A stretch of 64,000 nt of DNA from Chlorokybus atmophyticus (lineage: Eukaryota > Plantae > Mesostigma and Chlorokybus algae): assembly GCA_009103225.1 (NCBI GenBank), contig RHPI01000773.1, positions 210,003 to 274,002 on the forward strand, written 5' to 3'. How positions within the stretch are numbered: the stretch's first letter is position 1; every line of letters starts with the position of its first letter. Position numbers and translations under genes: made by a program. Positions 9,701-34,539 of this stretch are shown piece by piece. A model generated the notes under the pieces. It worked only from the letters and a program-made list of their open reading frames with translations, was not told where the DNA came from and ran no database searches.

Positions 9701-10128
9701 AGATGAAGGACTTAGTGTCTCTGCAGCTTGCACATAAGTATTGTGTGACTGACAGCATAGCTCGCTATAGTGCTGAGTTGGGTGGGTCTGGGCGCAATTG
9801 AGCACATCGAAAAAACTCGATTCACGCTCAGCGTATCTTGCAACATGCGGTTTACCGACCATGTAACAACCACAAGACTTGCTCCCTGCTTAACACTTTG
9901 TTCTGTTAGGTTGTGAATCGCATGCGTTACTGTGCAGCGTGTATCACAATCACGCTTGCTGCAAATAGTGATGTCCTTGGTGGCATGGCTAACACTATGT
10001 GTCATGTCAAGCATCAGCAATAGCAAGAAACACACCAGCACACTTGGATCATTTAAGCATGCAACATTTGGGTCTCGCACCCTCTATGCCTGGGCCATCA
10101 CTGCAGACACAACCCATTATCAATATGT

Positions 10129-12700
10129 CTATATGCAGATTCCGATGCAAGGGGCAGACCATGCTTGAGCCACGGCCCTTGCTCTGTGATGGCTGCCAGG
10201 CAAGAAGTAGGCAGGCGCTCCATCCTTCTTTGTACCGCGCAAGACTTTGCCTGTGCCATGGTCATCGATGCGAACACAAGATGCAAGTCCTTGGGCATCA
10301 CCATGATGCGTTTGGTATGAATGGCGACCAATTGGCTGCATGGCAAACAATAGTTTAAGGAAGACATTACTGGCATCTGCCTAGTGCGCTCACCTTCTTT
10401 CAAAAATCTCAACAAGAAAAGCCTCAGCGGATTCGTGCATCGCTGACATTGCGGTGGCCTGAAAGCGGACTGCCTCAAGCATTATTGGCGTAGCGATCTC
10501 GCGGACCAATCGAGCGAACGGGAGCTGCGACAAATATGCACAAAATTGAGATTGGGTTGCGTTTTGCCACATGCATGTGCTACCGACTGTGTTTGCAATG
10601 CAGTGGCAACTCACGCACCTTGGGGAGCAACAACTCTCGACCCTTTTGGTAACGGCGTATCTTGGGCAATGCTATGGTCTTTGATTAATACTTGTGTGGC
10701 TTGGACGCTTTGCGCTTGTTGGTGGCAGCTGCTGCCTCTTAATTGGGAGGCAATTCCGCTGGCTTGCGCGGCAATGACTTCTTTGCGACGCGCGAGTGGC
10801 GTCCCTTCTTCTTCATGAGAGTGCGCGTTTTTGCTAATGGTGACTTGCTTTTTGATATGCGCTTGACGGGAGGGGTGCCGGGTAGAGCGTCGGCGCTGCT
10901 GCGCTCTCTTTTGCCCTTGGCGGCTGGTGGTGCCGTATCAGCATTCTGCATGTGTTTCACCGCATGTTTCGCCCAATCCCACTTGAGGTCCGCTGCCTTC
11001 CTTGCATTTTTGCCCTGCAAATTCATCACGATTTGTCTGCATTGGCATGCCAGGCCAAAAGAGATCACGTCAACCATCAACAACAAACATGCAGATTGTG
11101 AGGACGCAAACAGGCTGCTAGACCATCAAGTGCGTATTTGTTGATGCTGGCTCTTAGCATGCTTTTATAGATTAAGCTGCTCTGTTAAATAGCCTTCCTT
11201 TGCCTCCTTCTGCAGCTTCTTGGACTAAACCTGCTCACCTGCTGGGAGGCTATTCAATTCATCATCGCCTACCAGCAGCCGCGACAAATTTTTAAACGCA
11301 ATTGACTCTTGCCCACGACTTGTCCTGTTTGGACTTCTCTTTATCTGCTTTTAGTTCAACACAAGCTAGCGCGAAGTTGGGGTCCAGTTGTGGTTCGGCT
11401 TTGGCTTCTCGGGTGCTGGGGTGTTGTCCGCCTCCTTGCGGGTGCTTGGTTGTTGTCCGGGTCCTTCGTGGTTGGTGGGTCATATAGGAGGGTGCGCCCG
11501 CAGAGTCCTTGCTGCGCATCAACTCATGCCATTGCTGCAGCACCTTGCAACTCCGTGCCCCGCACAAACAAGTCAGTGACGACCTTTCAGTCGTCACGGT
11601 CGCCACCTGCTGGCACGCCCTCCTTGCTAAAGTCTCTGACTGTCACAGGGATCCTCATTGTGTACAATTGTTTGGGTACACCTTGACACAATTGTGTAAT
11701 GGAGCACTATATATGCGTTGCATAGGTGCAGTTTTTAACACACAAGTGCTGACCTCCGAGTGCGTGCTTTCCTTGTTGTCTTGCGCCATTGAATTGACCA
11801 ATGGTGCATCTACGGGATGTAAACAATCATCACGGATTGCTAAATTGGCAGGGTCCCCCGTTTCGTGTGCCTGCACGCAGACATTTGCAATGTCAATGCA
11901 GGCAATGCATTGTTGTATGTTTCAACTGCATGATTGGGTCTGCAGGGACTCACCTCGCCGGCGCTGTTGTTTTTTGGTCCGGATGCTCGGCTAGTAACAG
12001 CTGAGCAGCAGGCAACTCTGGCTGCTGCTGCGGCTCATGTGAGTTTATGACAAAGCTTGATGCACATACACATAACATGTTCATGTGGAATATATGTAAA
12101 TGAGACTATTCGCGCGTGCTGGTCATGATGCGGCATGCTGCAATGCAGTTGGCAATGAGATACAAATGTCATTGCACATACAAATTTTAATAACCTGCCT
12201 TGTTGGCAACGTTGACCAAGACTGTCCGCTCTTCAAGTCCGAGCTGGGGAGTCGGCGGTTGTTCGAGTGTGCATGCAGCAATTGACGCTACTCACAAACA
12301 TAAACAGACATATACATACACCACATCACACACAAGAGCACTAGGTAGCCAGCACAGCAATTGTCAACCTTTGTCGATCACAACGTCGTCGGAGATTGAG
12401 AAGACAGCGAACACGCACACGAGCACACACTCACACTTGGCTTTTATGGTTGAGCAGCAACACTTACCTGCTGGTCGTCCGCCATGACCCTTAATTCGTT
12501 GTCCAAAGGTGAAAGCGGGTAGACCTGCCGGCGGATGGTAGTTTCCCGCACTCTCGCCACAGCTGCCAGTGCTGCCATCATGCTATGAGCCGTGCCTCTG
12601 CTTTGATCGGTTGATGGCCTGTCCAAACACTGAACGCCAGGGTTGGCAGATGGTCTATTGCGCATGCTGACAATGGAGTTGGCCTCATAGTTGGCTTGAT
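10129..12700 (-). pseudogene. Long multi-exon protein ending in a histone H3/CenH3-like fold (degenerate)
   Basis: Exons ...-10619, 10524-10394 and 10335-... joined by GT-AG introns give KPHKY*SKTIALPKIRRYQKGRELLLPK|LPFARLVREIATPIMLEAVRFQATAMSAMHESAEAFLVEIFERS|QLVAIHTKRIMVMPKDLHLV, a clear H3 fold. In-frame TAA at 10739-41 and 10685-87, and a probable frameshift after the fold. Upstream exons (11.0-12.7 kb) are inferred only. Confidence 0.8.
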
Positions 12701-13430
12701 AGTTGCACGTGATGTTTAAGGAGAATTGCGGTGCATACCCTAGAGTGGCGAAAGCCAACCTTGCAAACGGTGCAAGGCCTGGAGACACGGGGGAGTGCAA
12801 CAACATGGTTGATGTAGATGGCTTAACGTGGCCATAATGATGCACCAACGGCAAGAGTTAGCCACAGTCATGCCAAATTGCATGTACAATTGCTTGAACC
12901 TGCAACATGCAGCCCTACGCACAATTTATGTGTTCTACATGTACGTGTGCGTGCATGTGCATGTGCATCAAACTGCTTGGTTTGGCTGTGCTGCACTCTT
13001 TTCACGACTGCTGCATGTCCGTTATGACCCTTGTGTATGGATGGATTGTGTGTGTGCGCATGCTTGTGTACCAGGTCCATTGCCTTCATGCTGTGCCCGA
13101 TTGTGCCTGATGGGCACCGATTGTCTAGCAGAGAGTGACCGCATGCATAAGTGTACAATATGCCCATGTTGTTCAATTGTCTATTGTGTCCGCATGCTTA
13201 TAGGGTGTGGACCAGCTTTATTGTTGACCTGCTATGTGCGTATGTGCGGTGATGTGTTGTGTGCGCTTGGCACAGTGTGACAGCCCATGCGGATTTGCCA
13301 TGCACAGCGTCGTGGTCTGCATGGTAGCATGCATGCGAGCGCAATGTATACATCTGCTTGTTTGGACCGATGTGGTGTGTATTTTGCATGCACGTGTGGA
13401 AGTGCAAGAATGATGACGTCGCAAATTTTA

Positions 13431-13780
13431 CACGGTGACTGACTAAGGACTGAGGGACTGACTGGTGCCTAGCCTGCCTAAGCCTGCCTGTTTGCCTGAA
13501 ATATTACTTTTGGCTTGTTGGGTTTGCCGTCGGCTTAAGTGGACTGATGCAGCGGACGGCCGCGGGCCGAAAGTGGTTGTCAGTGGCACTAACCGGCCGA
13601 GAGTTGTCAACCAGTTACCCTTTGGTCGACGTGCACAGACGGCCGTTAGCCGATAGTTACGGACAGCTGACAGCAATAGCCGGCAGTTTTTTGCCGTTAC
13701 ACTGCTGTTAATATGTGACCCTTGCCGTTTGACAAAAGTTGGCAGTTCTTGCCGTTAGCCAACACTAACATGCCATGCAG
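13431..13780 (+). mobile_element. Candidate left terminus and subterminal repeats of the Plavaka element
   Basis: Starts CACGGTGACTGACT after TTA, followed by GACTGA/GCCT and TTGCCGTT repeats. Similar to 5027-5085 (TACTGTGACTGATCAGGGACTAACGGGTGCCT). No matching right end was found. Confidence 0.4.
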
Positions 13781-14059
13781 CTTGTACAAACTTTAGACTG
13801 ATTGTTTGGTCTTGCACCCATAAGCCCACAATATATACAATGTACCGGTAGTGGTGAGAGTATGTCCACTTGCAACTGAGCAGCCGACTTGCGCATGAAA
13901 CTACCCTATAACATTGAGTCTAGCTGTCGGACTCATGCGCAGCTTGTCAACCCGTGGTGCCTGCCTCAGAACTCCTCCTCAAACCCCTTCCTCTTGTTCC
14001 TCCTCCAACAAGTCTCCTGCTTCAACGCTGGAGTCATCTTCATCCGCTGCCTCGCTCGC

Positions 14060-15023
14060 TTACAATACAGCGGCTACTTCGTCCTTCAGCTTGAATGTCA
14101 GCGCCTCGCCGTGCACGCGCATGCGCTCGATGGTCGCTTTGAGAGTGACCACCTGCAATTGGTAATGCTGTAAGAGTGGCGTGCTGCCAGAGGACTAGCC
14201 CATCAGCATACACACGCTTACCTCGTCTTCCGCTTCGTTGCACTCCGCCAGGTAGACAGGCAGCCTGCCGCGCTGCTCTCGGTTCAGTCTAACCAACATG
14301 GCAATTTGCAAGCATACTGCTTAGTTACCGCTGTAAACATTACATCAAACTAGGTCATGGAATACCCGTTCGTGGTACTCCGCAGCTTCTCTTTTGCGAC
14401 TTGTGAGCTCCCGCAAGTAAAAATAGGCTGTGCATTTGCGAGATTGGTCATGCTGTTCATGTGCATGACACTGGAGGTTGTGCATGAGGGTGTGCATGTG
14501 GTATTGACAGTGTATGTCAAGTGCAAGATACTTGAGGCTGTGCATGTGCAAGATAAAAGAACCCTAGCATGTGGCATTGACAGTGCATCGTAACCCACCT
14601 TGGTTATGCCAGTCTTGTTTGGTCCCTTCAATCATGTCGCCGTGGTCGCAGCTGCTGATGGGTCGGATTTTCTTAGAGGCAGTATTGTGGTGTGCCTTTG
14701 CCCACTCGGAGGGGGAGCCCTGTAAGATATCGCCCGAGTCACTGTTGTCATTGGCTGTGCCCTTGGTAGGCATGATGGGGTTTGACACCCAGGACACCTC
14801 TCCGGCACCCTGCCCGCCCTGTGCGAACATGGAATTCATCCCGAACCTCGACCACAATGCCCACTACGCCCCTGGCAGCGCCGCCAACGATCCTCCAAAC
14901 GCCACATACCCTCGGCATCACGCCTCTGTAAGGGCATAGCTTGGCGGAGCTATCAATGGTGTTTTCATGCGCAGGGGGACTGACATTGCCAGAGTTGTCA
15001 ATGGTACGAACTGCCATTGCCAT
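14060..15023 (-). CDS. Hypothetical multi-exon gene divergent from the transposase
   Basis: ATG at 15023. Exon peptides CPYRGVMPRVCGVWRIVGG..., AYFYLRELTSRKREAAEYHERVFHDL, LNREQRGRLPVYLAECNEAEDE|VVTLKATIERMRVHGEALTFKLKDEVAAVL*. No recognisable domain. Confidence 0.4.
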
Positions 15024-15285
15024 TGTNGCGGTCGCGGCGGCGGCGGCGGGTGTGCGTGTTGCTGGATATAATGCAGGTTACATTGGCGACACCTGTGTCG
15101 ACGTTAGTCGTGAGATACGGGAGTCCTTGGTCCGTATTGCCACATGCGCTTTGCCACACGCAGCTCGTTCTACATGCACATTATTAGCAGCAGGGCGTGC
15201 AAGCAGATCGAGCTATGTCGGCCAGCGTCCATAACAGTACGATGCGGGTCATGTTGAACTGGGGAGTTCAATCCAGGATGCGCAC

Positions 15286-18244
15286 ATGCTAAATGCTGAA
15301 GGATTCTTCCAGGAGACACACGCACAGCAGCAACAGGAGGAGGAGGAAGTAAACGAGGGCTTTCGATGTGTGCCTGAGAAACCTGTCGCACGCCAACATG
15401 GAAGTGGAGGCGTCCCTTCGCACGCGTCGAAATCCAGGTGGTATGGCTCGGAGCATGCTCTTGCAGTGGCATTCGTGCAGTGCAACAACGGTCAAGGCCT
15501 GTCGGCCTCCGACATGGGGCGGATCATCAAGTGCATCCGAAATGCACACTCCCTGACGGACGAGCTCCAGTGGGAGACCGGTGTGCATGTGGCCAGCTAC
15601 CTCCGGACCACAATTGCTTTCTCTCAATCTGAGGTGTGTTCACGGTGTGCGGTGCATGTGCTTCAACCATTAGAGCCATGTCACATATGCACATGCGAGT
15701 GTGCTGCCGTATCAGAACTACGTGACGGCTGACCTGCGCAAGCCTGGAGACCCTGAGGATCAGGACATCAGCGTCACATATATGCCGGCGAAGGTCTGTG
15801 AAATGCAGTACCTAATGCAATATCGATGCACTATCTATTTCGAGGCCAGCATAGTAAGTAATGCTCTTGGTCAGAGCAGGTATGGCTCGCGCGGTTGTAT
15901 GGCAATCCACATGCCGCAAATGGCTTCAATCTCCAGTACACTGGTGACGAGCATAGCTTGGCCATCCTTCCACGGGCGATTGGTGGAAGGATGTGGAGGT
16001 GGATTTGAGGAGAGAGGTGGGGAAGCGTCCTACTTGGCGCCTGCCATTGTGTGCAGTGACAAGACCACGCTGGACAGTGCGGGCAAGCGCTCTGGCTACC
16101 CTCTGATGGCATCGCTTGCCAACTACAGTTGGGACATGCATGCTAGCAACATGGGGGTTGTTATGATAGCGCTTCTGCCGGTGGTTCACGCAGTGGCCGG
16201 GCATCCACCTGGGCGCAGGGCAAGGAATCGTTCTCCATTCGGAAACGTGAGTTTTTTATGACGCTTTGAATGTAGTGTCAGGGGATGTGAATCGGGCGAG
16301 TTGGAAAGGTCAGCAGCTCATTGATCGGAATGGCATCGAGCGTCGCGTGTTTCTTGCGCTTGCCAACTACATCAATGACTTGCAGGTAGTGGGCATGAAT
16401 GATTGTAACCAGATGCAGCCTGCCAGCAAATAGTGCATGGAGGATGCTGTCAGTAAAACATTTGAGTTTGTCGTGTTGTAGGAGACTGCCACACTCGCAC
16501 GCACTGTGTCGGGCAACCAAACACGACATCCTTGCGATGTTTGTCTTGTCACCAAATCATATCTGTTAGAGATGGATGAGGATCGAAAATTAAGAACCGA
16601 GGCCTTCTATACACCAGCAATACGTCAGCTGCGGGCGAACCTGCATAGCGGTGTTAGGAATGCACGCCAGACAGCTAAGGCTTTCAAAGAGCAGCACTCC
16701 ATGCATGTCGAGGAGGTAATGGTCAAATTATACGCATTCGTGAGGATGAATGGCTTTGTGTGAAACCAGGCAACGTGGTTTGGCAACAAAATGCACTGTG
16801 GGGTTGGCGACAGTCGCGGGTGCCGGGAGCTGACTGCTACTCTCGTTTTGCCTGATGCAATGCATGTGCTGGAAGGCATCATTGACCACCTGCTTGCTGC
16901 TGTGTACGACGCCGCGAAGGAGCGAATGCGTCCATCCACGAGACAGATTCTGCAAGCCAGGCACGTCATTGGTGTTGCTTTTGTGCTAGACACAAAAGCC
17001 AACGATACGTGCTCACAAGCAGATGTGCACAGGCTGAATGCATGCAAGGCGACTCTGCGGGTTTCGCACTTCAAGGCACCCACAAGCACAGTAGATTTCT
17101 TCCTGTCCGACCACTCCTTTCAGGTGGTGGAAAAAGTGGTGGTGCTGCAGCTGCTGCCGGTCCTCGCAGACGGTTTGCTGCTCGACAGTGAGGGCAACGA
17201 TTTCTGCACCATTGCTGCCGCATCGCTTGCCTAGTGGAACAAGAAGTTGCTCAAGGCACATGAACACACAAGAGAGACCCTGACCACATCCGACAACGAG
17301 CTGGCTGCCTTTAAAGCTGCAGTGTTGCATCCGCTACTGTCGTCATATTCTGCACAGAAGTCAGGTTGGAAGATCGAGAAGATGCATCAGCTCACTCATC
17401 TTGGGCCGGCAATTGTCAGCAGTGGACACCGAGATTGGTTCAGCGCCAACCGCATGGAGCAGACGCACGCCTAAAATATCAAACGGTGGGCGCGTGGTGG
17501 CAACAACCGGGACTACCATGCACGTATCCTGAAGGCATGGAGCTGTGCGAAATATGTGAGAGAGGATGGCATGGCCGTGGATCCCGAGATGCGCTCGGTC
17601 ATGGCGCAGGCGCGGCAGCAGTGCTGTAATGTCATGGAGAAGATGGACAAGTTGCTATGGATCAATGTGCTGAGAAGGAGGGAGTCCAGCCCGTACTGCA
17701 GCGGATCTGCGCGTAGCCGCCAAGTCGCCTTGAAGACTCCATTCGCCGACAAGCTGCCTGCCGCCCTGGACAGCTGGTTGAGGAGGGAACAACTGGAGTT
17801 GGCCGACGGGTGGCGCGCTGTTCGCGTGGTGAACGGAGGCGCAGCGGTGTATATGACATCCGGAGTCAGCATGGCGCGCGCAACTGGGATGTTCCATGGG
17901 CGGCCTTGGTTCTCTACACTTGAGTTAGAAGGTGATGAGAACGGTGTGAACGTGACGTGGTGGGCTCAGGCACTCCTTTTTTTGGGCGTGGTGGTGTGGG
18001 GTGGTAGCGGCGAGCGCGTGTGGAAGGAGGTCGTGTTGTCCGCTGGTACACGAAGCTGGATGTGACGAGCGACATAAAGTGCATCGCTCTGGAAGGGGAA
18101 AAGCGTCGAGGCGGTCCACATTTCGATGTCGTGACTCTAAAGCAAGTAAAAGGCATTGTCCAGCTGCTCCCCATGTTTGACAAGGACAGCGCGCGTGTAC
18201 AAGAGGGCAAGTATTGGGTGAACGTCCACTGCACTTCCACGTGA
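15286..18244 (+). pseudogene. Plavaka-family (CMC-related) DDE transposase, disrupted
   Basis: Motifs in the expected order: HPSTGDWW, AIVCSDKTTLDSAGKRSGYPLMASLAN (D1), LANYINDLQE (D2), HPCDVC, PDAMHVLEG, KIEKMHQLTH...SANRMEQTH (E), RATGMFHGRPW, VRWY...VQLLPMF...YWVN. GT-AG introns. In-frame TAG 17232-34 and TAA 17472-74, plus several frameshifts. Confidence 0.85.
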
Positions 18245-18447
18245 CACATGTACTTGTCTTACTGCTCTGAGTTTGTAGCATTTCAGTAAGTTAGGCATTG
18301 CTAATCATATGCTAAGACTTTTGCATGTGGATGTGTACGATACCGGGCAGCTGTCACTGCACAACTGTCACCACAATCGAATGTGCCATGCAACATTTAA
18401 GAATCAGTCCGCCGTGTGGCATTAAGCATCAATACAGTGCACCACAC

Positions 18448-19400
18448 TCAAGCCTCATAGTTCCATGACACAGCAGGGTAGTCATAGCGCATATCCATTG
18501 TTTCAAGCATGAGACGCCCTATGCACTCCGCCATTGCGGGAGGAACTGCATTCGCTATAAAAACGGCCGAGGTCATCCATGGCACTCCCAGCGCTGATTG
18601 CCACGCAGCAATGCCGCCCCTGGTGCTTGAAAGGCCATAGACTGGGTACATCTGCTGTGGCGCGTTTGATGTCACAATTGTCTTCTTCGCGCTAGCGGAC
18701 AGATGCGGCAATAGCAGTCCAACTGCCTTGCCCGCGTGCTGGTGGGGTAGCTACCACTGGCGGTGTCTCAAACAGACGGTGTCGGAAAGTTGATAGGCCA
18801 AACATCGTGCCACAAAGGGACAGATTGGGTCTGAATGAGGAAGCTGCTCCTGGCACATTCTCAATCACAAACTTGACCTGGCTTGCAAGCAGCAGACGTC
18901 GGACGAGCGGTATCATATCCTGATGTCTCTAGGATGTGCCATGTGCCGCCCGTTCAGGTGCCGGGATAGCACCTGAATAGGCCTGGCATGGTGGACTGGC
19001 CCAGCTAAGCTCGTACTTGCTCAGCTCTCCTGCACTTAGGGTGCATACATCGCGGTGTATGAACGGCAGCGGGTACTCAGAGGAGGGACTTATGTCCATC
19101 CCGGTCACGTCAAAGCCTGCGTGGCATAGAGCGATACTGGCACCGCCACTGCCGCAGAATAGGTCGAGTGCCCTTGGTCTGCGTGTGCGTCCAAGCTTGT
19201 TGTCAAATGGCGTGTATGTGGTCCAGGCTGGCCATGGTGCTGGCCAGGGACCAACAATGATGCCGTTCGGGCTTACTTTGCGACTGACGTTCTCCCTTCC
19301 GGCGCGCAGAACATGGCGTGCCCCGTCAACTGATGTGTACGCAAATACGTTGTGCCCTTTCAAGTTAATGGTTTGTAGTCGATCACCGTTATCGTACTAT
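18448..19400 (-). pseudogene. C5 cytosine DNA methyltransferase domain, compact phage/viral type
   Basis: Motif I LDLFCGSGG, II GMDI, III RDV, IV ASPPCQAYS, VI VIENVPGA, VIII FRHRLFE, then ALGVPWM and X NAVPPAMAECIG. In-frame TAG at 18929-31 and one frameshift near 18740. The catalytic domain has no intron. Confidence 0.9.
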
Positions 19401-20163
19401 ACAGTGCTACCCTGCAAAGACATTTTCCATTACACCATGCATATATGATGCGTCCTCAATCTCGCACGCCACAAAGCGATGCTGACCTGACACTTGCTTG
19501 AATGATTCCACAACGCCCGCATACCATTCCCCATTCAGCGGCCAATGCACCATGACACTCACACCGATCAGCTGCTCGCATCCCAACTTAACTGCGTTCC
19601 GCAGCCGATGCAGTGCGCTGTCAAACGGTCGATGGTCTGCCTCCTCTACAGCGGCCAGGGGATGGAAGTGCCCACGCCCACACCCTGGAAGACTGCTCTG
19701 AATGCGACAATAGTTTCAACATGCATGAAATAAGCATACGCCCAACATAACATGCAGTGATACATCGCGGTCCACTCTGCCGAATTACCTCCACAGCATC
19801 CGCCACCTGCCCACTAACCACATGTCCCGGTGTTGTCCATGTGAAGAAGCGCGTGGGTTCCCCTCGCCACTCGAAGCATGGGCGCGAGCACGATTCGCAC
19901 ACGCACTGCACGCAATGTAAAAACTCGGGTTCCTTGCACAGCACTGGGCCGAGGTGGCAGCCAAACACGTCGACATTGTGTGTGGTGTGATGCCAGCAAG
20001 CAGCACTAAAACCGTGGCACACTTTCTGCACTCGCTGGCATTCGGTTAAGTGTGCTAGCATTTGCTGCCTACGGCCATTAGCACATACGTACGCATTGCA
20101 TTGTGGGCACACCAAGCATGGTCTCCTAGGTGAGGGGGATTTAACTGCTGCCGCCGACATCAT
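19370..20163 (-). CDS. Cys/His-rich region plus Tudor-like domain, N-terminal part of the methyltransferase gene
   Basis: MMSAAA...CLVCPQC...HLTEC; CKEPEFLHCVQCVCESCSRPC; then LIGVSVMVHWPLNGEWYAGVVESFKQ...YDNGDRLQTINLKG, which runs in frame into the MTase ORF at 19363. Confidence 0.65.
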
Positions 20164-20206
20164 GCAAAATAGGAATCGGCACGGCTGCCCACAAACTGAG
20201 CGAGAC

Positions 20207-20254
20207 TTTAGGGTATGGGCATCAATTTAGGGTTGCCAGCTTACGAACCCTAAA
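20207..20254. promoter_or_regulatory. Cluster of three telo-box (TTTAGGG/CCCTAAA) motifs upstream of the Tudor-MTase start
   Basis: TTTAGGG at 20207 and 20226, AACCCTAAA at 20246, 45-90 bp upstream of the minus-strand ATG at 20163. Confidence 0.45.
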
Positions 20255-20683
20255 TGGGTCAAACTTCAAGTGAAGCACGACTGTACCAAGAACGCTATTG
20301 CAAAACCATGCATGGTACTACATAAACATGAATGGTACTCCATCTGTTAATGGTACTACAGTACAAGGATACTCGCATACTACCACGATCGTAGAGTAAA
20401 ACTGTGCTGTCATGCCATGGAACCCAGAGCGCTGTCCGAGTTTGTTGCTATCAACCACGCTCTAAATCAACGAGGTATGCAAGCCATGCACTGACTCATG
20501 CGCCGGGCAGTCATAATACACATGTACAGCCAATGCTTCCAACAACAGCAGATCTCTGGTGCACCATGCACTATGCTGCAACTATACATGTACCTACATG
20601 GTTCACAGAAAGCCAACACAAAACTACAACATGCACAATTGTCATTAAAGCGGGGGCCAAGTCACCGCCGACACGTTGGCGTC

Positions 20684-23600
20684 TTACATCAGGCGTGGCG
20701 ACCAAAACGGGTGAGGTTGCTTGCACATGGGACACGCTTGCAGATGCTTTGATTTATTTGCCACACTCTTCTGATGTGCTATAATGCAAACATGGCACAT
20801 CGCTTTCTTGCAACATGGCGTCTCCCCATCCGCCGGAGGGGGGGGCTCTTCAATGTAACAAATCAGCACACATGGTGCACGCGGGTGTGCAAGCTGCCTC
20901 TGCCACCAAAGTCTGTTATTACGTCGCAGGCGTAGCGACTCCCAACTGAATGGCGCAGCATACCGCTCCACTGCCTGCTTGATCACCTGTTGCCCATCTG
21001 CCGCCATACACCACCTGCTGGTCTTGGTGGTCTTATCCAGCATGTGTTCATCCAGGCCCTCGACATGGCTGTCGTCACTCGTGTACTCCCCCGCATCGTC
21101 ATTTATTTCGAGCTTCCACAGAATCAGCTCGACGTGCCGTATGACATACAGCCATTGCCAGCCAAAGCATGCCACGTACAGCTCGAATGGTTGTACTTGC
21201 CACCCAATATGTTTGCTCAGATAGTGGCACACATCTCGACCCGCATTAGTCGACATCGACAGGTACATCTGCTACAGGAGGTCGAAGTTCTGCTCCGCAG
21301 ATAGCTCTTGAACATTGCCGGGTTGCTGCGGCAGCAACAACACCATCATATCGAGGACGGCGAGGGGCATCAACGTACTACGGATGGCCATATCGTGTAT
21401 GGGTTCCAACCACGGCCAATCCCCAGAGGTCTGTTTAGACCGCACTCTCCGCGTTTGCTCCCACTTATTGCATACTTTCGTCACCCACCTCGAGGCATGC
21501 CGCATGCGGTAATGCAGCGCGTCTTGGGCGTACTGTAGGGTGATCAGCTCCTTTACACTACGAGTCAGCCCCTCGAAGCGTCTGCGCGTCGGTGCTTTGA
21601 GCTTAGGCTGCTCGTGCCGCACTGGCTGTCTCTTACAGACGATGCTGAGTAGCCACTTGACGCTGTAAACCCGCCTGTGCCTACTCAGGACACACAATCA
21701 GCCCCAGTGAGGCTTCAAGGCGCTGTGCTTCTTCTAATGTTGTTACGATGCCTCACTTGTCCTTTTTTGGTCCTGTCAGCGTCCTTTGTTCCAACAACCC
21801 TCTTTTTTTTTTTTGTGTCACCCTGCACATCCTGGCAGGCGCTCCGTGGCACTGTCACTCAGAGGAGGTAAGGCGTTATCTTCTTGCTCCACAGCCTTGC
21901 GCTTGTTGGTTGCCTCTCGTTCCTCCACGACCTCATGTTGCTTCATAAGGTCGAGCATGAAGCCTTTGTCTTTCAGCGCAGCTTTCAGGACACCTCAATC
22001 AATCTCTTTACCAACAAGACAAGCTGGGATCAATGTGGCAAGCTTAGAGGGAGAGGGCGAGCTACAGCTGCTTCTTGATGGAGATGCCTTTAAATGGTCA
22101 GAGTGCGGTGGCAAGTGAGTCTCCGCGGCAGGAAGGGAGGGTGCTGAATTGGGATTGCGAGCATGTGGCTGTGGTTGAGGGGAGGCAGGATGTGCAAAAC
22201 ACTCGGCTACTGCTTGCCTAGCACACGAAGGCGAGGCCTGAGGCGTTGGCGCAGCCCTCTGGGTCACAGCCAGTGGTAGCGGGGAATTGGCAACGCCATT
22301 CCGCCACTCTCCGATCAGGTGTGTTACCTCCGGTGCCACTTCATGCATAGGCCACGACCACTGTTCGGTGCTTGCAGGCTTGAGGAGCCAAAAGTGTGCT
22401 TCTGGCTCATCAGGAGCAGTGTTGCCCACCACCAGAACTGAGTTGGGGGCTTCTTTATTTCCAACCCAAACTGCGCTGCCGGACCGTGGCACCCACTCCT
22501 CATGCTCGTGCTGAACGGTCACGCAGCCAATCAACAAGCCAAGCTTGTTGGCAAACATAGTCATCTGCAGGTAACGATGTACAAAACTTTTCTCCGCACG
22601 ATCTGTCGCACTTTAGCCATGGCTAGGTCAATGTTGCAATTGACATCAGCCAACATGGTCGCAGGCAGTTTATCGTAATACTGCGCCATCTCTCCCGCGG
22701 CACCAGTGGCTCTTTGGAAGTCTAGGATTCTACTCGCCACGCCTGCATCGACAGCCTTGGCGGTGATTTTGCGGAGAGTGTGCCCCCTGCCGTCGTCGTC
22801 CATGGTGTCCAGCATGGCCCAAAATCTGCTCGAGCTGGGGCACTTGAGATACTCCAGGACACTTTGCGCTATGGATGGCCTGGCGCAAAATACACAATGG
22901 TAGAAGCAATTACCATCCGTTGGCGCATTGAAGTGGTCTCATGAGGCGAGCTGGCCACCTAGCATGACTAATGGTCGTATGCCGGTTGCGGCCAGCTCTT
23001 CTGATGACTCGCTGGCAGGTGGTGACCCCTGCTGCATGCGCATACAGCACTCAAATGGTGTGTCTAATTGTGGACGGCAAGAGTCACAGTGACTGCTAAA
23101 GTACCTGAGTTTGCGGCAGACTGCCGGCTTCAACTTGCAGCGGGTGGAGTAAGGTAGGTGCAGAAGCCACATCGGTTGTTGCATTGTGCTGTGGTCTCGC
23201 CGGTGGCGGCAAGAAGGATTGTTGCCCCGCAATCACCGGTGCTGCTTGTGGAGGAGATGGCAGTGCATGAAGGACTGGTGCCGCGGAAGGTGGTTGCGCT
23301 CTGGCTGGGAGGGGAGCAGGAGCTGCAGGTGAGACCACTTGTGCATGCAGTAAAGGGGGCTGTATACAGGACCCAGGATAAGATGGCTCACAATGTTGCA
23401 AAGGACGAATATAAGCTTTCGCAGTGCCTGACGCATTGGTACCAAGGCACGAGCATAAAAGATAGCGACTTACCTTAATGGCCCGTGGGCTGCATGGAGC
23501 AGGGGAAGCCATGAGGGCTGACAAGGTGGTATTGGGTGCACTCTCCCCGCCACCCTTGATGGCAGACTCGTCACGGAGCTCGTGAGCCATGGGCACATCA

Positions 23601-24700
23601 TGCGCCACTGCCCCAATGGACATGTCGGGATTCAACAGGCCAACATGCATGTTAAACTGATGCCGCATTGCCGCCGCGCCCATCAGCAAGTGGGATTGAA
23701 GGACCAGTTGATGGGATTGAATCCAGGCTTGCATAGGAGCTCCAACAGGACCTAGTGCACTGTGGTGCTGTCAACCAATCACATGTGGGTTAGCTGCATG
23801 CTTGCGACACTGCAATTGCAATAGTCAACTGCGTCACACCGTCATCAGTTGGTTGCTTCGAACAGTCACCTGCGGCATTGCTGGTTGATGCACTATTGGT
23901 TGAATGCCGGACGAATGGCCACGCGCTCCTGTGCTCAAACCCAGCCTACTTCGTTCGGCACGCGCGCGCGACTTCGCACGCTCACGCACATCCTAGCATG
24001 CAAAGGTAGGCATGCATTGGAGCCGACATTGCAGTCAACATGCACAGCGAGATTGGCAACAACATACCGCCGCCCAGCTCTGTCTATCTGCTCTTGCTTC
24101 CGCAATGTCGGCTTGACTGTAGGGTGGGTATGGGTGAATAGTGGAGGCCTGCAGCCACGCTACATATATCACATGGACTGCGCTAAAAAACAAATTGCTC
24201 TTGCAAGGAAATGCATGTGACTGTTGAGCGTACCTCTGCATTCCTTTGTGCTTGTTCCCACAGCCGCAATTGATCCCACATGGTTCTGACAAGGGGCTCC
24301 AAGGATTGCAGCTCCTGATCCACTCCTTGTTGCAGAAAGCGAGCCACCAAGCAACTCTCTGTGTGATGATGGTCATCAATGGCTTGCCTGCTGGTTTGTC
24401 CAATGTTGGTGATGCATGTTGGACAGCCCCATTGCTGACGCCTGCCATGATCCATGTCGTGGCGACCGTTATAGCTGGCTTTGCTGCTTGAACTCTTACG
24501 ACCACAACTTCTCGCAAACTGTGCCACGCCGCCGCCGCCGCCGCCGCCGCCTCCTTCGAGTCCTGGTCCTCCGCCTCCTAGTCGAACCCAGGCCCATCAA
24601 GCCTGACATTCGACCCGTCATCGACCTGGTGCCCTTGCGTGCCATCATCCGGCCATCAATGAAGCGTGTTTGGGTGAGTGCACGATAACTCTCATTTGGG
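20684..24700 (-). pseudogene. Long multi-exon orphan gene (or two genes) ending in a RING-type zinc finger
   Basis: C-terminus CVLIC...PCCKKAMCHVC...CPMC. ORF 21272-21697 continues through an in-frame TAG into ORF 20684-21268. Upstream coding-like exons reach ~24.6 kb, with stops and frameshifts. Confidence 0.55.
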
Positions 24701-24715
24701 CTGATCGAGCAATGC

Positions 24716-24872
24716 CTCTGTCGTACCATGGATGGTACGACAGAGCCATTGTACGGCAATGGCTGGGGTTGGACGAGAGATGCCTCTGTCGTACCATAAA
24801 TGTTACGACACAACCATTGTTACCAATGGTTGTACGAAGCATGGATGGCACGAATGCATAAGTCGTACCATC
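24716..24872. repeat. 14-bp hairpin and repeated GTCGTACCAT motifs between divergent genes
   Basis: CTCTGTCGTACCAT-gg-ATGGTACGACAGAG at 24716-24745; motif repeated at ~24785 and ~24862. Confidence 0.85.
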
Positions 24873-25053
24873 AACCATAGGAGCAAGGACGCACTACAAG
24901 TGCGACTCTAGTGCGGGACTCTAGACGCTTAAAACCGCCTCATTTTCGTTTTCGCGCCTCGTATATTTGAGCGGGCCAACCGGCGGCGGCAGGGTTGGAG
25001 GCGGCAGCGCCACTATCAGCTAAACAGGCGGCACCGGACTATCAGTTGGAGAG

Positions 25054-26877
25054 ATGCCCCGTGGTCCATCCGTAAGTGCACCTCGTCGTGGCGGTCGGCG
25101 CCAGTTGTCTGCATTGCCCCCAGTGTTCAACCAGGCAACCGTCGCCAACCAATCGCAGCAAGACCCCGCGCTAACGCCCAGCACATCACAACAACTGCAC
25201 CTGACACTGTAGTCGCAAGGGCAAGCTAGACTGCATGCGTTCTTGATGCACTGTGCACGATGCTTCTTGCTCAACTGTTAACTTGGATGCTTGCTTCTTT
25301 CATGACTAGCACAGCGACTCACTGCATGCGTTCTGGATACACTGTGCACGTTGTTCTTCTTTTGCAACTGTGAGGGTTGCATTTTTCATGGCTGGCAGCA
25401 TGACTCATGTGGTTGTGCTTGCAGAGGGTCGATCGGAACCCCCAACCCAAACGCATTTGGCCGTGACGTGGCAACCTCGGACGTCAGCAACCCTTCCCCA
25501 AGCAAGTGGAAGATTGGCAACGAGGTAAGCACTGTGTGACACTGTGACACTGTGTGTATGTGTGTAACGGATTGTTGTTCTGTGGACAGCATTCGCGAGA
25601 TGCCGTCGTTCAAATCATAAACGGCCACTGGGTAGAGAGCCACGTTTATCCCAAGGAGGACACTATTTGTAACGTCATGTGTCAGGTGCTGTGAATGCTT
25701 CATGCCGCACTGCACCGTGACACTGACCAACCTGCCCGTGACAGGTAGTTGGCTTCGACCATGACGACGAGGCCGATGCGGCCAAATTCTATAAGGTGTA
25801 CTGGACTCCCAAGAAGTGCCCTTCCACAGGAGTGTCACCTTGAAGAAAGCTACGCAGGTCTGGTCTGAAAACGTCACCAAGATCAAGCATGTCCTTGAGA
25901 AGGAGTACAAGTAGACACTGTTTAATAGCAACAAGCGCAAGTGAGTTGGGTCCCTCACCACCATGTCTGCTATACAATACTGCCTTCTTACTCAGCCTCC
26001 ATACACACGTACTCATCTCGCCTATTGTAACCGATTCAATCAGGCACATCGACGCCCTAATGGACCCCGAGACCCAAAAAGCCTAGATGCGCAACGCGCT
26101 CCAAAGTAAGTCACAGGCACTATTCTAGCCTGGTGCAGGCTCAACTTGAACTATCTATTTCGTGACTAATGCTTTGTCGGTATGACTGTCGCAGACAAAT
26201 CATGGCGAAGATTTGAGGTGACCGACACTGCAGACCCGGAGCGGAGGAGATGCATCTATGAATGGGGCAATCCCATAACTTGGCAAATGATCGTCAATGC
26301 TGGTCTTACGCCGTCACTACACCTGGTCGTCGGCAGCTGACAATCAACCACCTCGCATACCTGTTGCTTACGGTGAGCACTCTAAACTCCATCATTAGCA
26401 ATTCAGGAATGCTAAGCCCCAAACTACAGGCTTGCAGACGCGTTGCAGTGAATAGTGGCTTTCGATGCCGCGAAGACATGCCTGTAAACTACGCAGGTGG
26501 AGCGCATCCTAAAGGGCAAGGATGGAGACCCTCTCCTAGCTCTCAGCATAGACACACATGAAGAGTACCTCAGCGAAATCAACACCATATTCATGTCAAT
26601 GAAGCGGGAGATGAGGCAACGGTACGCAGCCCTCCAGCCATTCACCCTTGTGAAACGCCGCACTGCATCTTGTGTCGAATACCTGAAAGATCCCAATCGG
26701 CGCCGGCCGCAAGAGACAGCAGCTCGTGACCCGCTTGCTGAGACAGAAGCGGCATTTGATTGGCTGGCACAACCGTTTGAGGAGGAAGAGCAAGCTCCAG
26801 CGTCTCCTCCACAGGCCCCAGCGCGTGGTGCTTTGTTCCGTAATGACGAGCAAAGCGATGATGAAGAGGAGCTGTAG
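25054..26877 (+). pseudogene. Multi-exon orphan gene, disrupted
   Basis: MPRGPS... start; exons SRDAVVQIINGHWVESHVYPKEDT|VVGFDHDDEADAAKFYKVYWTPK...; last exon VERILKGKDG...SDDEEEL*. In-frame TAGs (e.g. 26084-86) and frameshifts. Confidence 0.55.
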
Positions 26878-27258
26878 CGCAGTTGGTAGTCCGTTTAGCT
26901 GATAGTGTACATAGCTACAAGGCTCTTGTAACTGAGTGTTGTGCATCTTAAACCAGCTCAGTCAATCGTCATTATGCTCATGCATATCAATGCTTGCATC
27001 CCTATGATATACAACAGAATTGCATTCAAGTCACATAATCGAACTACAAGCCTTGGCTGGTGACAGAGAGACACTGTACACATTTCAGGTACATGTACAC
27101 AGCACAGGCACATAACAATGCTAGCAATCAGTGACAGTCGCGTGTAGTCAAGCTATGGAAATACATATGACAACAGTTAGGCATTAGTCACCTTCAGCTG
27201 TTAAAGAATGCCTTATTTTGTCGATAATTACCTAATTGGTGCTTGTAAATTAGGCTAA

Positions 27259-27480
27259 GTCGCCTGCGCTGGACTAATGTGTAACCTGCAGGTGCCTATC
27301 ACATAGGCTGAGTCACTTAAGTAAGACTGATGTATAATTTGCAAGTGCCTGCTAATCAGGTGTAGTCACCTGTTAAGGCCTAATGTGTAACTTACAGGTG
27401 CCTGTAATTTATATGAAGTCACTTGTTAAGGCCTGATGTGTAACTAACAGGCGCCTGTTAGTTAGGTATAGTCAACTGTC
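27259..27480. repeat. 53-bp tandem array, ~4.2 copies (subterminal-like)
   Basis: Units start at 27259, 27312, 27365, 27418 and 27471 (GTCACCTGTTAAGGCCTAATGTGTAACTTACAGGTGCCTG...). Confidence 0.85.
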
Positions 27481-27581
27481 AAAGATTAAATTGTAATTAA
27501 AAGGGCCTGATAGTAACGAAAGTTACTATAAGGTCCCTGTATCAAGATTACAGGTGGACTGAGCCACGACAGTCTAGATTA

Positions 27582-29532
27582 GTGTCCTCAGGTGCACGGC
27601 CGTTGCCAATATTTAGTCGGCCGCCAGGGAAAACATATTGCGACGGAGCGCAAAATGTGGCGCTTCCTGGTTTCAGAGCCACATTTGCTCAACCAGGACA
27701 AGGTCACCGACATTTCGACAACCAAAAGATCAGCATGGCAGGCTTTGGGGACCCGCACCTGAATGCTGTCTTCTCTGATTGGATTGAAGAGGTCCACTCG
27801 CTGTGCGTCGTTGAGCCGATGACATACCCATCACTCGTCCGCGGGCTGCGGCAATTTGACGCTATGCATCAAGCGCGGGTGATGTATAGCAATCTGATAA
27901 TGATGGTGGAAGATTTGTATGAGGTGGCCAAGACATTGGCGGCTGCCAACGAGGACCGGTTGTGCGACTTGCGTACGATGTAATCCGCGTTGGCACGTAC
28001 GGTATTGCTCGATAAAGGACTCATCCATGCCTATTTTGCTCAGTTGCGGCGATGTACGCATCGCACTATCAGGTAACAGTTGCGCATTGGAACACTCTTG
28101 ATGCACAAGAATTGGTTATGCTGTCTTGGGTCAGCGGCTTTGCTGATTGCCAATGTGAATTGTAAACTGAGGTGTTGTGTGAACAACGGTAAACCGTCCC
28201 CGCTACTCTTTCCTGACTGGCGTACATCTGCAGAAGGAAGCTGTGCACAGCGCCCATGCGCGTTGCAAAAGTGGAGGGTGTTGAGAACATACGCGCACGC
28301 CACAAAGGGCATGCACCATCTACATCGTGCGCATCTAGGTTATGCTGACGCTGCGGATGATGCAATCACGTTTATGCGACTCCGTGATTTTTATTGATGG
28401 CAAAAAGATGTCACGGCACGCGCTGAGCGTGTATTAATGACCATTGGCAACTCTCTTCACAACTTTGGCAATATTTGTAAGATCTGCTGCCAGGACGTGC
28501 GAATGGTTGAGTTCCAGGCCTTGGTTGAAAGTGGTAGATGTGCGGCACGTCTGCCTCCACTTGTCTTCACTGGCTACGAGAGGAACCGCACCATAGAGCC
28601 AGAGCCATTGCCACATCAGGGTCAAATTCGATCGTGATGCTGTTTACCAACAGATGGAGCAGGTTCATGTTGATGCATCCAAAGTGATAGCAAATGCGCA
28701 TGCCGCCAACACACGCACAGCAAAACAAGAACCGTTGGTGGTGAAGCCTAAAGGGGCAACATCATCCATTGCCGAATGCAAGGGGTCCTTTGTTTTGCGC
28801 CTGGTGAAGGAGATCAGGGAACGCTTCATTTGTGTCCATTAGAAGCTGAGCACGATGCATCAATGGCGCCGGTTTGCTTTGCGTGTGCTGACTAGGGCCA
28901 ATCCTGAGTGTGTCGTCAGCAATAGTAGCTCTCCTTTGAAGGTGTTGGTGCAGCAGGGGGGGGGGCTGGAACTGCATTATACTATGCGGGTTGTAGACAC
29001 TCCAAGTGAGCCGAGTTTATTGCAAGTGGATTGCCATGAACCACCTGCATGCATTTCGTTGCGATCGCCAGCGGCAAACCGTTAACATCGCTGTCTTTGG
29101 GCAGTGGAACTGCAAATTGCCATTGCGCATCCTGAATGCTGATGTGTTGTTCATGGTGGCAAACCATTTGACTTGTCACGTCCGCAACCATGATTGCATG
29201 TGTTATGGAGGACGACGTCAACACTCCGGATGGATAAGGGTAAGGGCGAGTGGCCGCTGCCCGGGGTGACGCAGCCGCGCGACAGTGCGGGCCCATCCAC
29301 AACGGGCTTAGATCCTTCTGCGCCACTCTTCTGCAGCGGAAAGCCAAAGCTTCAGCCTTTTGCGCCACACAGTCTCCTCATTGCCGCATCGACCATCGAA
29401 ACAAAGCAAGAGGACAAGGCAGAGGTTAAGGTCAACTTCGAGCTAGAGCCAGAGGTTAAGATCAAGCTCAAGCCAAAGTCAGAGGTCAAGGTTAAGCAAA
29501 GGCCAAGGCGAGGAAGGCAGCTTGCGGGTTAA
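27582..29532 (+). pseudogene. Decayed orphan gene(s)
   Basis: Co-linear coding-like ORFs at 27582-27983, 28230-28637 (in-frame TGA 28395-97), 28654-28842 and 29006-29532. The 5' part is homologous to 5385-5460. Confidence 0.45.
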
Positions 29533-30779
29533 ATCGCAAGCTGCGACGCTTGTTAAAAGTTGACTTGCATAGTTGCACTGTTGAGAGCATATTATGGACA
29601 AGTTCGGTCAGCTTGAAATGGCCAAGTCCCTAATGTACTAGTGGTTATGGTATAAGGACTGATATCGAGCAGTTGTGAGTCCAGTGGCCGATATCTGTGC
29701 AACGCGGAGTGTGAGCAAGCCCGAAAACTTTAGACTTAGCTGAGTCTGGCGCAGGCTGGCGCAGCTCAGAGCTCCAGAAGGCTGGCAAGAACTCCTTATG
29801 TAGTTAGTCTTATAGCGCGTGGCATAGCTTATTGGAAAGCGTGTAAAGCTAGCTATGTGGTACAGCGCCACGCTTAGCTGAGTATAGCTTAAGTGGTGCT
29901 TACTAGAGTAAACGTGTGTAGAGACTGGCAGGGTACAAAAGCCTATGAACTCATAATATCTAAGCTCGTTGTGCGTGCTTATGCTCATGGTGTAGCATGC
30001 GTATGTGTATTGGTGTTTGCACCAGCTCCATGCATGTGTAGTAGTTTGTGAAAATCTCAACAACGCTCACTGAAAGCAACACCACCCGCTGCTGCAACCA
30101 ATATCGCGGCAGACGTGCAAGACTTGACGAGTGATGACAAAGGCCTTGGCCAAGGTATATCAGAGTTCAAACACGACAAATAGCACAGATCATTTCGCAC
30201 CATGATATGCAATTCATGCGACGATGGCGAGGGATATTTGGGACGTGACGATGACGGCCTCTCTTCAAAACCGACCCTTGAAGGCTACGATGTGGACGAG
30301 CAGCATGCGATCTAAGAGTCTCATAATGAACAGGTCAACACCGTGGTGGCCCAGCTCCTCATTAATTGCTTGCGGAGTAAGCCTAGAAGAGGCGAAGCAT
30401 CTCGTGTTGATCGATTTAGGCAAGAGGCATTACACCATTTCGCATTACCTTGGCATGCAATCGATGCCGGGACATCAGAGAGAGAGATTAGCATGTGTAA
30501 TGACTCACTTTTGCAGTTAAGCATGCCGATAATATTGCATGTACACACCATCAACCAAAGACACACCATCAACTAAAGGCCCAACATATTATTTCAATGT
30601 CGACTCATCGCCACACACTCCAACTACTAAGGTTGAACAGACAAGATGAAGCGCGATATCAGGCACATGTACAAAATATTCAGATAAATGGAATTTGTTT
30701 TTTATGCAATATTTACAAACTCAATACAATTCATATACATACACATATACGTATATATGCACCATGCACACGTGTATAT

Positions 30780-31340
30780 GTATCTGTATACACATATACA
30801 TATGCATAATATATAATATAATATATACACCTTCAATACCATTTGCATGCAAGCACTTACACACCATCACACTCTTGAGGTGAGGTGACAAGGTCACATG
30901 CAATATTATGCACATGTACTTGCACTGCTATATGTACATGTATATACATATACATATAAATAATATATACACCTAGAGTACCATTTGCATGCAAGCACAC
31001 TTCTACACCATCGCACTTTGGTTGAGGTGATAAGATCACATGCAAGACTATGCACATGTATTTGCACGTGTATATCTATATGTATATATGTACACATATG
31101 CATAATATATACACCTATAATGTCGTTTGCATGCAAACACACTTCCACACCATCACACTCTTGGGTTAAGGTGACAAGATCACTAGCAATACTATGCATG
31201 TACTTGAGACACAAATAACATAGATAAGTATATATGTATGCAGCATCAACCCTTACTACAATTAGGGTGCAAGCACACTTGCACACCTGCAACACTTGGG
31301 TTGAGGTGTCAAGATCACATGCCACATACTTATTGCCGAA
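30780..31340. repeat. AT-rich ~142-bp tandem repeat, ~4 diverged copies
   Basis: The anchor CATTTGCATGCAAGCAC...ACACCATC.CACT.TTG.G.TGAGGTG recurs at ~30840, 30982, 31124 and 31265. Confidence 0.8.
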
Positions 31341-31953: not shown

Positions 31954-32979
31954 GGCTTGTGATTGTATGTGACAATCTTCATGTCAAATTCATATGATTG
32001 GGAGGTGCCTAATTCTCATTGATCATGCCACTTACACATGTTAATTCTTTGTGAAATAGACCAATTGTATGTGCAACGGTGTTGTCTTTATTTGTACATG
32101 TATTCACATGCTTTTCGTCACTTCAAGTACCAACCCTGCATTGTATTTGCATACAAAATAGAATATAATAGAATATAATTGCCATATGTGTCATCCGACC
32201 ATTGTTGCCATGCACTGAGCTATCAATCTTAGTGTTGTGCATTAAGGCCGGACAAGCGGCTACCATAATGTTCAACATTGGGGAAGCTGGCCTGTTGGCT
32301 TAGCCAGAACCCAAGCGCCCTTTTGTGTGAACGCAGGCGTTGGCGGAGCGCACTGGATGCCCAGTTTCACAGAGCAAGCTGGAGTCTGAACAAGGTGTAC
32401 GTAGAAGCTTCATTGAGTTGCGCACTTTTGACTGGCCGACACATACGTACAGCCCGTGTGACACAGGCTCCTAGCGCAGGAGGGCGCGGCTGAGGCAGAC
32501 ATCTGGCGTGTGGCGCGCGCTGTCGGCGGCACTTTATCGCCCCTGCTACACATCGGACGGCCGAGATCTGCCGAATAGGCGCCTACGGCACACGCTAACC
32601 GCCGGCGGGCTGCATGCGGCGTGCGCCGGCTGCAGTTTGGAGTCCGGCAAAGGACGCCGGACTCCAAACTTAACCGGATGTCATTACTATTCACTCCGAC
32701 AGGGCTTTTGTTTCTTAGTTGCCTGTTGCCTTAGAGTGCTGAAACATGTTGGCCAGCATTTCTTCCGCTAGGAACTCGGTCACCTGGCTCTCATTACATT
32801 GGACCTCAGGCCCCACTAACCTAACCGCTGTTCCGCGATCGCTTATAATGCAGCTAAGTTTCAGATATTGCAGAAGTGTGCAGTTGCCGTAGTGCATTTC
32901 CGCCGACAAGCAGGACGTGGTCGCCGCCGCCGCCAGGAGGAGGTCGCCGTGGTGGTGTTTATTGTTGTGACCCGCAGCC

Positions 32980-34539
32980 ATGGGTGCCTCCGACTGGTTC
33001 AGCGCCACGGCCATGTTCATCCTCTTCAGGGAGACATTGGAGGCGGCGGTCATCCTCTCAGTGCTGCTGCAGTTCTTGAAGAAGACCAACTCTGAGCACT
33101 GCAAGAAGCATGTACGTGTGCTGCTGAGTAGTGAAGCGCATGCATTGTCTCACAAGTTCGTCCTTCTCTCTCCAGCATGCTCACAAGGCTGGCAATGCAG
33201 GTCTGGTGGGGTGCTGGTCTTGGTCTAGCAGTGGCCATTCTGGTTGGCGTCGTCTTCCTGATCATATACTACACCCTTGACAAGGAGGTCTTCTCAGGGA
33301 AAGGCGAGCAGGTGAGCACTTTGCTGTTTCGTCGCAATGTGTAACTTTTCTCGCGTGCTTGTCTCATGCCGGTGGACGTGACTGTGCTTTGGCAGATTTT
33401 CGAAGGAGTCGTCCTCACTATCGCCACCGTCATGATTACTGTGCTGGGTTTTGCAATGCTGAAGATGATGGCAATGCAAGCCAAGTTTGAGAGAAAGCTT
33501 GCGGTGAGCATTGTGTCTCTGATTGTTGTGACCAGTTTGCAAGTATGTGTATGAAGCTCAATGCAACTCTTGAACTTCATGCAGGCGATGGCTGAGAAGA
33601 ACCTTGCTGGCAAGCAAGGCAAGGCGATGTTCATAATCGCATTCACATCGGTGGTGCGCGAGGGTATAGAGGCGGTGCTGTTCTTGACCGGTGTGGGCGT
33701 GGACAATCCCAAGGCCATCCCCATCGCTGGGGTTGTCGGCATCATCCTCGGCATCATCGTCGGTTACATCCTCTTCTTCAGCCTAAAGTTCACCAATCTC
33801 AAGTGGTTCTTCTACATCTCCACCGCTATCCTTCTCATCATTGCTGCCGGCCTATTCCGCCAGGCCATCCACGAGTTCCAAGAGGTGAGCTAAGCCAAGC
33901 TGTATCAGACTGCCTCACTGCGCATCTCAATGACTGACTGACTGACTGACTGTTTGACTAACTCACGAAATTGATTGTGTTCAGGCTGGTGCTTTTGGCA
34001 AGTACTTTGAAAGTGAGGAGGAGGAGGAGGCGGATGAGGGAGAGAAGCCTGCAGATGGCGGCTCTCGAAGGATGAGGTTTATGAGGCGGTCTCTCCTGCA
34101 GTCTGAGGAAGAAGAGGCAGGAGAGGAGGAGGACGACAACTACAAGTGGTTCAACAAGCCGCTGTGGAATGCTTGCAGCTGCTGCGACGATGATGACAAG
34201 GGCTTCTGGGAGCTGCTCAAGGCCATAGTTGGCTGGACTTGCGATCCCACCTTCATGGAGCTGATAGCCTACATCAGCTACTGGATCGTTGTTGCATGCA
34301 TCTTCGCCTGGAAGCTGCACAAGGGCACGCTCACGCAGTACAGCGACGTTGCGGGCCTGCCCGTCACCCGCGCGGACGTGCCTGACGAGGATGCATGTGG
34401 TGACGCTGCCGGATACAAGACGAATGACAAGGATGAAGCCTCAACCAGGATTGACATGCCGTCCGTTGCTGTGTTGGCTGCTGAGTCGAGGCCAGTTGAG
34501 GCAAGGACTAGTACTATACCAACAGCTCCTGTAGCCTAA
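32980..34539 (+). CDS. FTR1: High-affinity iron permease, copy 1 (5 exons)
   Basis: Exons ~32980-33111, 33201-33311, 33396-33503, 33585-33884, 33985-34539. Two REXXE motifs (FRETLE, VREGIE) and multiple TM segments. Confidence 0.93.

Follow-up and report, generated by a model that had tools for sequence, protein, structure and literature searches.

A decayed Plavaka-type DNA transposon with probable Tudor-methylase and OTU/RING-like cargo in the alga Chlorokybus atmophyticus

When decayed genes for a transposase, a DNA methyltransferase, a histone and a RING protein lie close together, where does the mobile element begin and end, and which of these genes travel with it? This question is raised by a 64,000-nt stretch of the Chlorokybus atmophyticus genome (contig RHPI01000773.1, positions 210,003 to 274,002; hereafter, the window), in which an earlier note had read bases 10129-30600 as one giant Plavaka transposon encoding its own chromatin writer, reader and histone. 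Our analysis does not uphold this unit: the repeated element runs from 13417 to, most likely, 27645, that is, 14.2 kb as opposed to 20.5 kb. These bases are probably one dead member of a multi-copy family of autonomous Plavaka-type (CACTA/EnSpm-related) DNA transposons, with Tudor-methylase and OTU/RING-like cargo. The proposed large, cargo-bearing cut-and-paste Plavaka element whose writer is fused to its reader is retained, whereas the histone leaves the set, since it lies outside the element.

The left end was set with contigs of four public runs (two studies, two coded organisms), aligned to bases 10393-16392 at 80% likeness. Summed contig depth was 0-2.8 across 10393-13392, a region covered by few perfect, single-copy-like pieces (e.g., 12664-12848 at depth 4.4). 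It jumped from 0 to more than 100 within bin 13393-13592 and, from this bin to the end of the aligned stretch at 16392, amounted to 74-157 (X1), 169-435 (X2) and 3-16 (X3). Contigs with loose ends before 13416/13417 carried differing flanks, five such X2 records being mutually only 50% alike, and one X3 contig started exactly at 13417. Because contig depth jumps at this point and the flanks of the contigs differ, the repeated element starts at 13417, a sharp left end that the contigs reveal to be shared by multiple copies. The depth ratio, which is not itself a copy number, suggests tens of copies. The copy in the window departed from the aligned contigs at ~118 substitution sites and 17 insertion/deletion (indel) sites in ~3 kb, i.e., by ~4%. 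Its private changes with respect to the family in X1 (13417-16392) were C-to-T or G-to-A in 44 of 94 cases, and these were not enriched at CpG (4/20 versus a background of ~38%). The left tip had no match in a metagenome scan.

The right end was sought by likeness to this left tip. Downstream of the left end, inverted CGTCGCAA occurs only at 27638-27645, and when the left 40 nt were aligned with gaps against all positions between 14 and 64 kb, the best inverted match likewise fell at the right end, with a score of 14 over a background of 2.5 on average (standard deviation 1.45; 48,623 positions). Plavaka families are known to generate target-site duplications of 2 or 3 bp (PMC12730594), and the GA dinucleotides flanking both ends agree with a 2-bp duplication, in one copy and with a chance match of 1 in 16. 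Moreover, the terminal sequence recurs in degenerate form at 27307-27342, within a 53-bp tandem array. Taken together, the inverted repeat, the flanking GA and these terminal-like subterminal repeats make 27645 the most likely end of the element. The earlier note had proposed that terminal inverted repeats and target-site duplications be defined; inverted 8-bp CGTCGCAA ends with GA flanks were indeed found in this single copy, the inverted repeat being imperfect beyond the 8-mer. Exact and seeded repeat searches returned no long inverted repeats, joining both flanks across the element restored no recognizable open reading frame (ORF), and the observed/expected CpG ratio was flat over the window, marking no boundary. 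Feature coordinates are compiled in Table 1.

Table 1. Coordinates of the Plavaka-type element, its component features and the adjacent H3-like pseudogene, numbered from the first base of the window.
Feature	Position	Strand	Basis or remark
Whole Plavaka-type element, decayed copy	13417-27645 (14,229 bp)	+	Left end by contigs, right end predicted
Putative 2-bp target-site duplication GA, left copy	13415-13416		Flanks left end
Left terminal inverted repeat CGTCGCAA	13417-13424	+	Contig depth jump, loose ends
ATGGTAC-type palindrome cluster	14990-15030		Upstream of transposase; interrupted by single N at 15027
Plavaka DDE transposase pseudogene	15235-18065	+	PF18759 match
Small phage-type C5 DNA methyltransferase domain, broken	18505-19180	-	Motifs I, IV, VI, X
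Tudor-like reader domain, same gene as methylase	19343-19589	-	Split at 19397-19469
Cys-rich N-terminal part of Tudor-methylase gene	19624-20226	-	ORF; no Pfam match
ATGGTAC palindrome cluster	20283-20358		Upstream of Tudor-methylase gene
OTU-like and RING-like pseudogene	20687-22938	-	OTU Cys loop near 22897-22926, RING-like Cys pattern 20720-20872
Densest ATGGTACGA palindrome cluster	24710-24871		Upstream of OTU-RING gene
Orphan ORF with acidic tail	26488-26877	+	No Pfam match
Subterminal 53-bp repeat, 3.9 copies	27274-27479		TTACAC..GGTGACT motifs as in left tip
Right terminal inverted repeat, TTGCGACG on + strand	27638-27645	-	Inverted match to left tip
Putative 2-bp target-site duplication GA, right copy	27646-27647		Flanks right end
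H3-like histone-fold pseudogene, outside element	10101-10720	-	PF00125

The interior is held together by short palindromes. Eight of the 14 ATGGTAC/GTACCAT sites of the window fall in three short clusters, and the exact ATGGTACGA 9-mers, five out of five inside the element, connect 15.0 kb with 24.7-24.9 kb. No ATGGTAC-type cluster was evident near the H3-like gene or at 27.6-30.6 kb. Because these clusters occur only upstream of the transposase, methylase and OTU/RING genes, we regard the element interior as one unit. A shorter unit, made up of the transposase alone or of transposase plus methylase and ending before 27645, is unlikely; it would turn the OTU/RING gene and the orphan ORFs into unrelated neighbours or a nested insertion. 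The best inverted left-tip match, the second terminal-like copy and the matching 2-bp flank all sit at 27.3-27.65 kb, the shared 9-mer bridges the two parts, and the interval of 18-27 kb yielded no other terminus; against this, a shorter unit can claim that contig depth covers only up to 16392 and that the ORFs at 20.7-27.0 kb lack both homologues and Pfam matches. The first palindrome cluster also bears on the assembly: loose contig ends at 15026 reveal that other copies go on with GGTACCATTTCAATGGTACC, and at the N in position 15027 their contigs read on as GGTACCATT(T/G)CAATGGTAC. Since other copies have sequence at this N, the assembly was interrupted in the palindrome cluster and probably lost sequence there.

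On the other side of the left end, the H3-like gene lies 2.7 kb away from it, where contig depth is 0-2.8 versus more than 100 within the element. The histone fold claimed by the earlier note was confirmed, with PF00125 scoring 35.3 bits over a cut-off of 26.4 on the minus strand (10393-10671), and an in-frame stop interrupts the conserved alpha-N helix (10640-10720; KPHKY*SKTIALPKIRRYQK). Because this gene is placed outside the left end, has single-copy-like depth and is devoid of the palindrome motif, it is a neighbouring pseudogene and not cargo; no transposon-borne histone H3, i.e., one located between the ends and repeated with the element, was found. These same data bear on a single giant element of at least 20 kb (10129-30600) that would take in the H3-like gene and all DNA as far as the satellite at 30.8 kb. 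The decay of every gene in the span fits such an element, as does position 30245, where the inverted left tip is weakly matched (10/12 bases), but in three runs the contigs either end or turn into other sequence precisely at 13417, the H3 side is covered by single-copy-like pieces only, and both the H3 surroundings and the right flank are free of the palindrome clusters, all of which renders it most improbable. Position 30245 was also tried as a right end and rejected, because its flank dinucleotide does not match. Bases 27646-30600 would be neighbouring DNA beyond the predicted right end rather than cargo.

Within the 14.2-kb element, the transposase gene is recognizable as Plavaka by a Pfam scan in which PF18759 exceeded its gathering cut-off (32.7 bits versus 26.3) at 16025-16192 on the plus strand, matching profile positions 108-166. 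A second, weak match to the same profile is colinear with the first in another frame (profile positions 184-226 on 16254-16430). The transposase frame runs 0, 2, 1, 0, 2, with shifts at 15957, 16018, 16204 and 16251, at all four of which some or all aligned contigs have one extra base, and five in-frame stops accumulate between 16254 and 18062. The tail-to-tail arrangement of the transposase and methylase genes described in the earlier note was corroborated, whereas the spacing of ~200 bp was not, as 382 bp separate the two stop codons.

The methylase gene is encoded on the strand opposite to the transposase, as had been proposed. Its DLFCGSGG, PPCQ, ENV and NAVPP sequences (minus strand, 18451-19396) provide C5 methyltransferase motifs I (FxGxG), IV (PCQ), VI (ENV) and X in this order, and three pieces of it are colinear with the 227-aa C5 methylase P0004 (residues 2-79; 79-136, E 5e-11; 185-220, E 1e-5). 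The reading frame is broken by a TAG stop (18929-18931) between motifs IV and VI and by a frame change before motif X. The earlier note had suggested checking these genes with profile hidden Markov models: the Plavaka and Histone profiles passed their cut-offs, whereas for DNA_methylase (PF00145) the colinear relative P0004 passed and the window piece alone, at 15.9 bits, fell under the cut-off of 22. The nearest relatives of the methylase domain are small enzymes encoded on phage-like contigs, with 45-53% identity across motifs I to X; of the contigs of P0001 and P0002, one carries ThyX and the other terminase, Mu-F and ParB. The closest of these relatives, 453 and 447 aa long (L001:779-2140 and L002:1402-2745), are encoded by phages, with an unrelated N-terminal extension of their own (~220 aa).

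The Tudor domain named in the earlier note was recovered as a Tudor-like segment in the same gene, with a phmmer E-value of 1e-3 to 7de9_A. This structure, 7DE9, shows the Tudor domain of Arabidopsis PDS5C, a reader of the PDS5C/RDM15 type, in complex with H3K4me1; the segment had no Pfam match. The next exon piece opens with YDNGDRLQTINL, which we take to be the second half of the domain. The Tudor-methylase gene seems to contain introns, and these, together with the plant-type Tudor domain, are what one would expect of a host gene merely residing beside a transposase. Such an origin is nonetheless very unlikely, given that the gene lies within the predicted element ends, is decayed like the transposase and has the same upstream palindrome motif, and that its methylase domain is nearest to small phage-borne enzymes and not to eukaryotic DNA methyltransferases (DNMTs).

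The third gene of the element, on the same strand as the methylase, is a putative ubiquitin-editing gene. A single frame extends from 22612 to 20687 with ~6 in-frame stops, and a possible upstream part reaches up to 23770. The OTU-like Cys loop DGNCFYHC and His loop AHFWLL are both present, with weak matches to nairovirus viral OTU (vOTU) domains (E 0.15-0.9; 0.15 at the Cys loop) and a weak Atlas lead of 0.86. As to the RING gene of the earlier note, its Cys pattern can be seen (Cx3C...CC..x4..CHxC...CxxC), while Lys replaces the canonical His and the support from TRIM30 (RING match, E 0.043) and Atlas (lead 0.87) is weak. Neither the OTU nor the RING ORF had a Pfam match, and no homologues of either were found in protein collections, from which the proteins of this alga seem to be absent. 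AlphaFold modelled the RING ORF with a predicted local distance difference test (pLDDT) score of 35.7, too low for the model to be used. Further orphan ORFs populate the element. The decay that the earlier note had perceived among the genes of the span was confirmed, with stops and frameshifts in the transposase, methylase, OTU/RING and H3-like genes.

Several points weigh against reading 13417-27645 as one cargo-bearing transposon. The right end was drawn from sequence only, with an inverted repeat that loses its match past the octamer, and the two-base GA flank carries the chance probability given above. Repeat depth covers 13.4-16.4 kb, and the segment from 16.4 to 27.6 kb is tied in through motifs in the window. 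Furthermore, the termini are unlike those of fungal Plavaka A and B, part of the single-base indels are possibly assembly errors, and the OTU and RING assignments are weak.

Comparison with known systems places the element within a known cargo theme. In the red algae Bostrychia and Chondrus, giant Plavaka elements of 17-19 kb carry accessory DNA and histone modifiers and internal tandem inverted repeats (bioRxiv 10.1101/2025.02.11.637652). The likeness extends to the Plavaka transposase, a size in the range of 14-19 kb, several accessory genes including DNA or chromatin modifiers, tandem arrays of inverted repeats inside and mostly degenerate copies. However, the host here belongs to a different algal lineage, and the red-algal cargo consists of PAG1, an N6-adenine methylase plus SET (PAG2) and a ParB/2-oxoglutarate oxygenase (PAG3), in contrast to the Tudor-C5 methylase and OTU/RING-like gene of our element; PF01555, SET and ParB had no match in the element ORFs scanned with Pfam, so that the PAG1-3 cassette was not recovered. 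In fungi, Plavaka and KDZ transposons carry TET/JBP dioxygenases (PMC12730594), and share with this element 2-3-bp target duplications and a cargo enzyme acting on cytosine methylation. The fungal cargo removes 5-methylcytosine (5mC), whereas that of our element would write it. Fungal Plavaka termini are TGT..ACA or CATCA..TGATG, those of this element CGTCGCAA..TTGCGACG; matching no described Plavaka lineage in its termini, the element would therefore be a separate one. Plavaka-flanked giant repeats have also been reported in Amoebidium.

De Mendoza and colleagues reportedly described, in 2018, retrotransposons that captured cytosine methyltransferases. These resemble the present case in that a mobile element encodes its own C5 DNA methyltransferase, but those retroelements usually carry eukaryotic-type DNMTs, whereas here the carrier is a cut-and-paste DNA transposon and its enzyme a minimal one of phage type, joined to a Tudor reader. 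The small phage C5 methyltransferases P0001, P0002 and P0004 are alike in sequence at the identity already stated, and P0004 and similar phage-type enzymes also in their compact size of ~215-230 aa; unlike the gene studied here, these phage enzymes lack Tudor domain, Cys-rich head and introns. The literature searched yielded no report of a DNA transposon that carries a C5 methylase fused to a Tudor domain. Novelty, as claimed by the earlier note, is thus only partial: giant Plavaka elements with modifier cargo are known from red algae and fungi, whereas the Tudor-C5-methylase looks like a new variant of cargo on Plavaka elements.

How intact members of the family might operate can be sketched as follows. 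The transposase would bind the terminal and subterminal TTACAC..GGTGACT repeats, cut at the CGTCGCAA ends and reinsert the element, duplicating 2 bp of the target site. The PDS5C-type Tudor would tie the methylase to H3K4me1-type chromatin, so that cytosine methylation would be written where this mark is, likely for tuning the element's own expression or mimicking host gene-body chromatin, and the OTU/RING protein would edit ubiquitin marks. That intact members are active transposons equipped with an H3K4me1-reading Tudor fused to a phage-derived C5 methylase and with an OTU/RING ubiquitin editor is a tentative proposal. If it is true, an element that moves by cut and paste could, in a relative of land plants, determine the epigenetic state of its copies or of the sites where it lands. 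Transposons are usually targets of DNA methylation, and elements that carry modifiers suggest that the parasite helps to set its own chromatin state; a C5 writer with a plant-type histone reader would extend the known cargo theme to cytosine methylation and to this alga, and the Tudor-methylase would be a compact natural reader-writer fusion. This copy is dead, and its value resides in the family's exact ends, its gene set and the removal of the histone from the story.

Beyond the right end, a protein-like ORF (27735-27980; MAGFGDPHLNAVFSDWIEEVHSL...) begins 90 bp past 27645, without homologues or a Pfam family. The host genes that the earlier note placed beyond 32 kb are recognizable, the Pfam scan having identified two tandem FTR1 iron permeases and an RSN1_7TM channel. 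Searches for tRNA and Rfam matches were negative within the window. Both FTR1 copies are borne by a tandem duplication of ~2.5 kb (32500-37400) with 80-94% identity, and an AT-rich 142-bp satellite (30800-31206; 2.9 copies) sits within a 39% GC trough separating the transposon-side DNA from the host genes. At the opposite side of the window, bases 3605-3824 consist of two 110-bp units in tandem with 100% identity, a duplication of very recent date or else an artefact of assembly.

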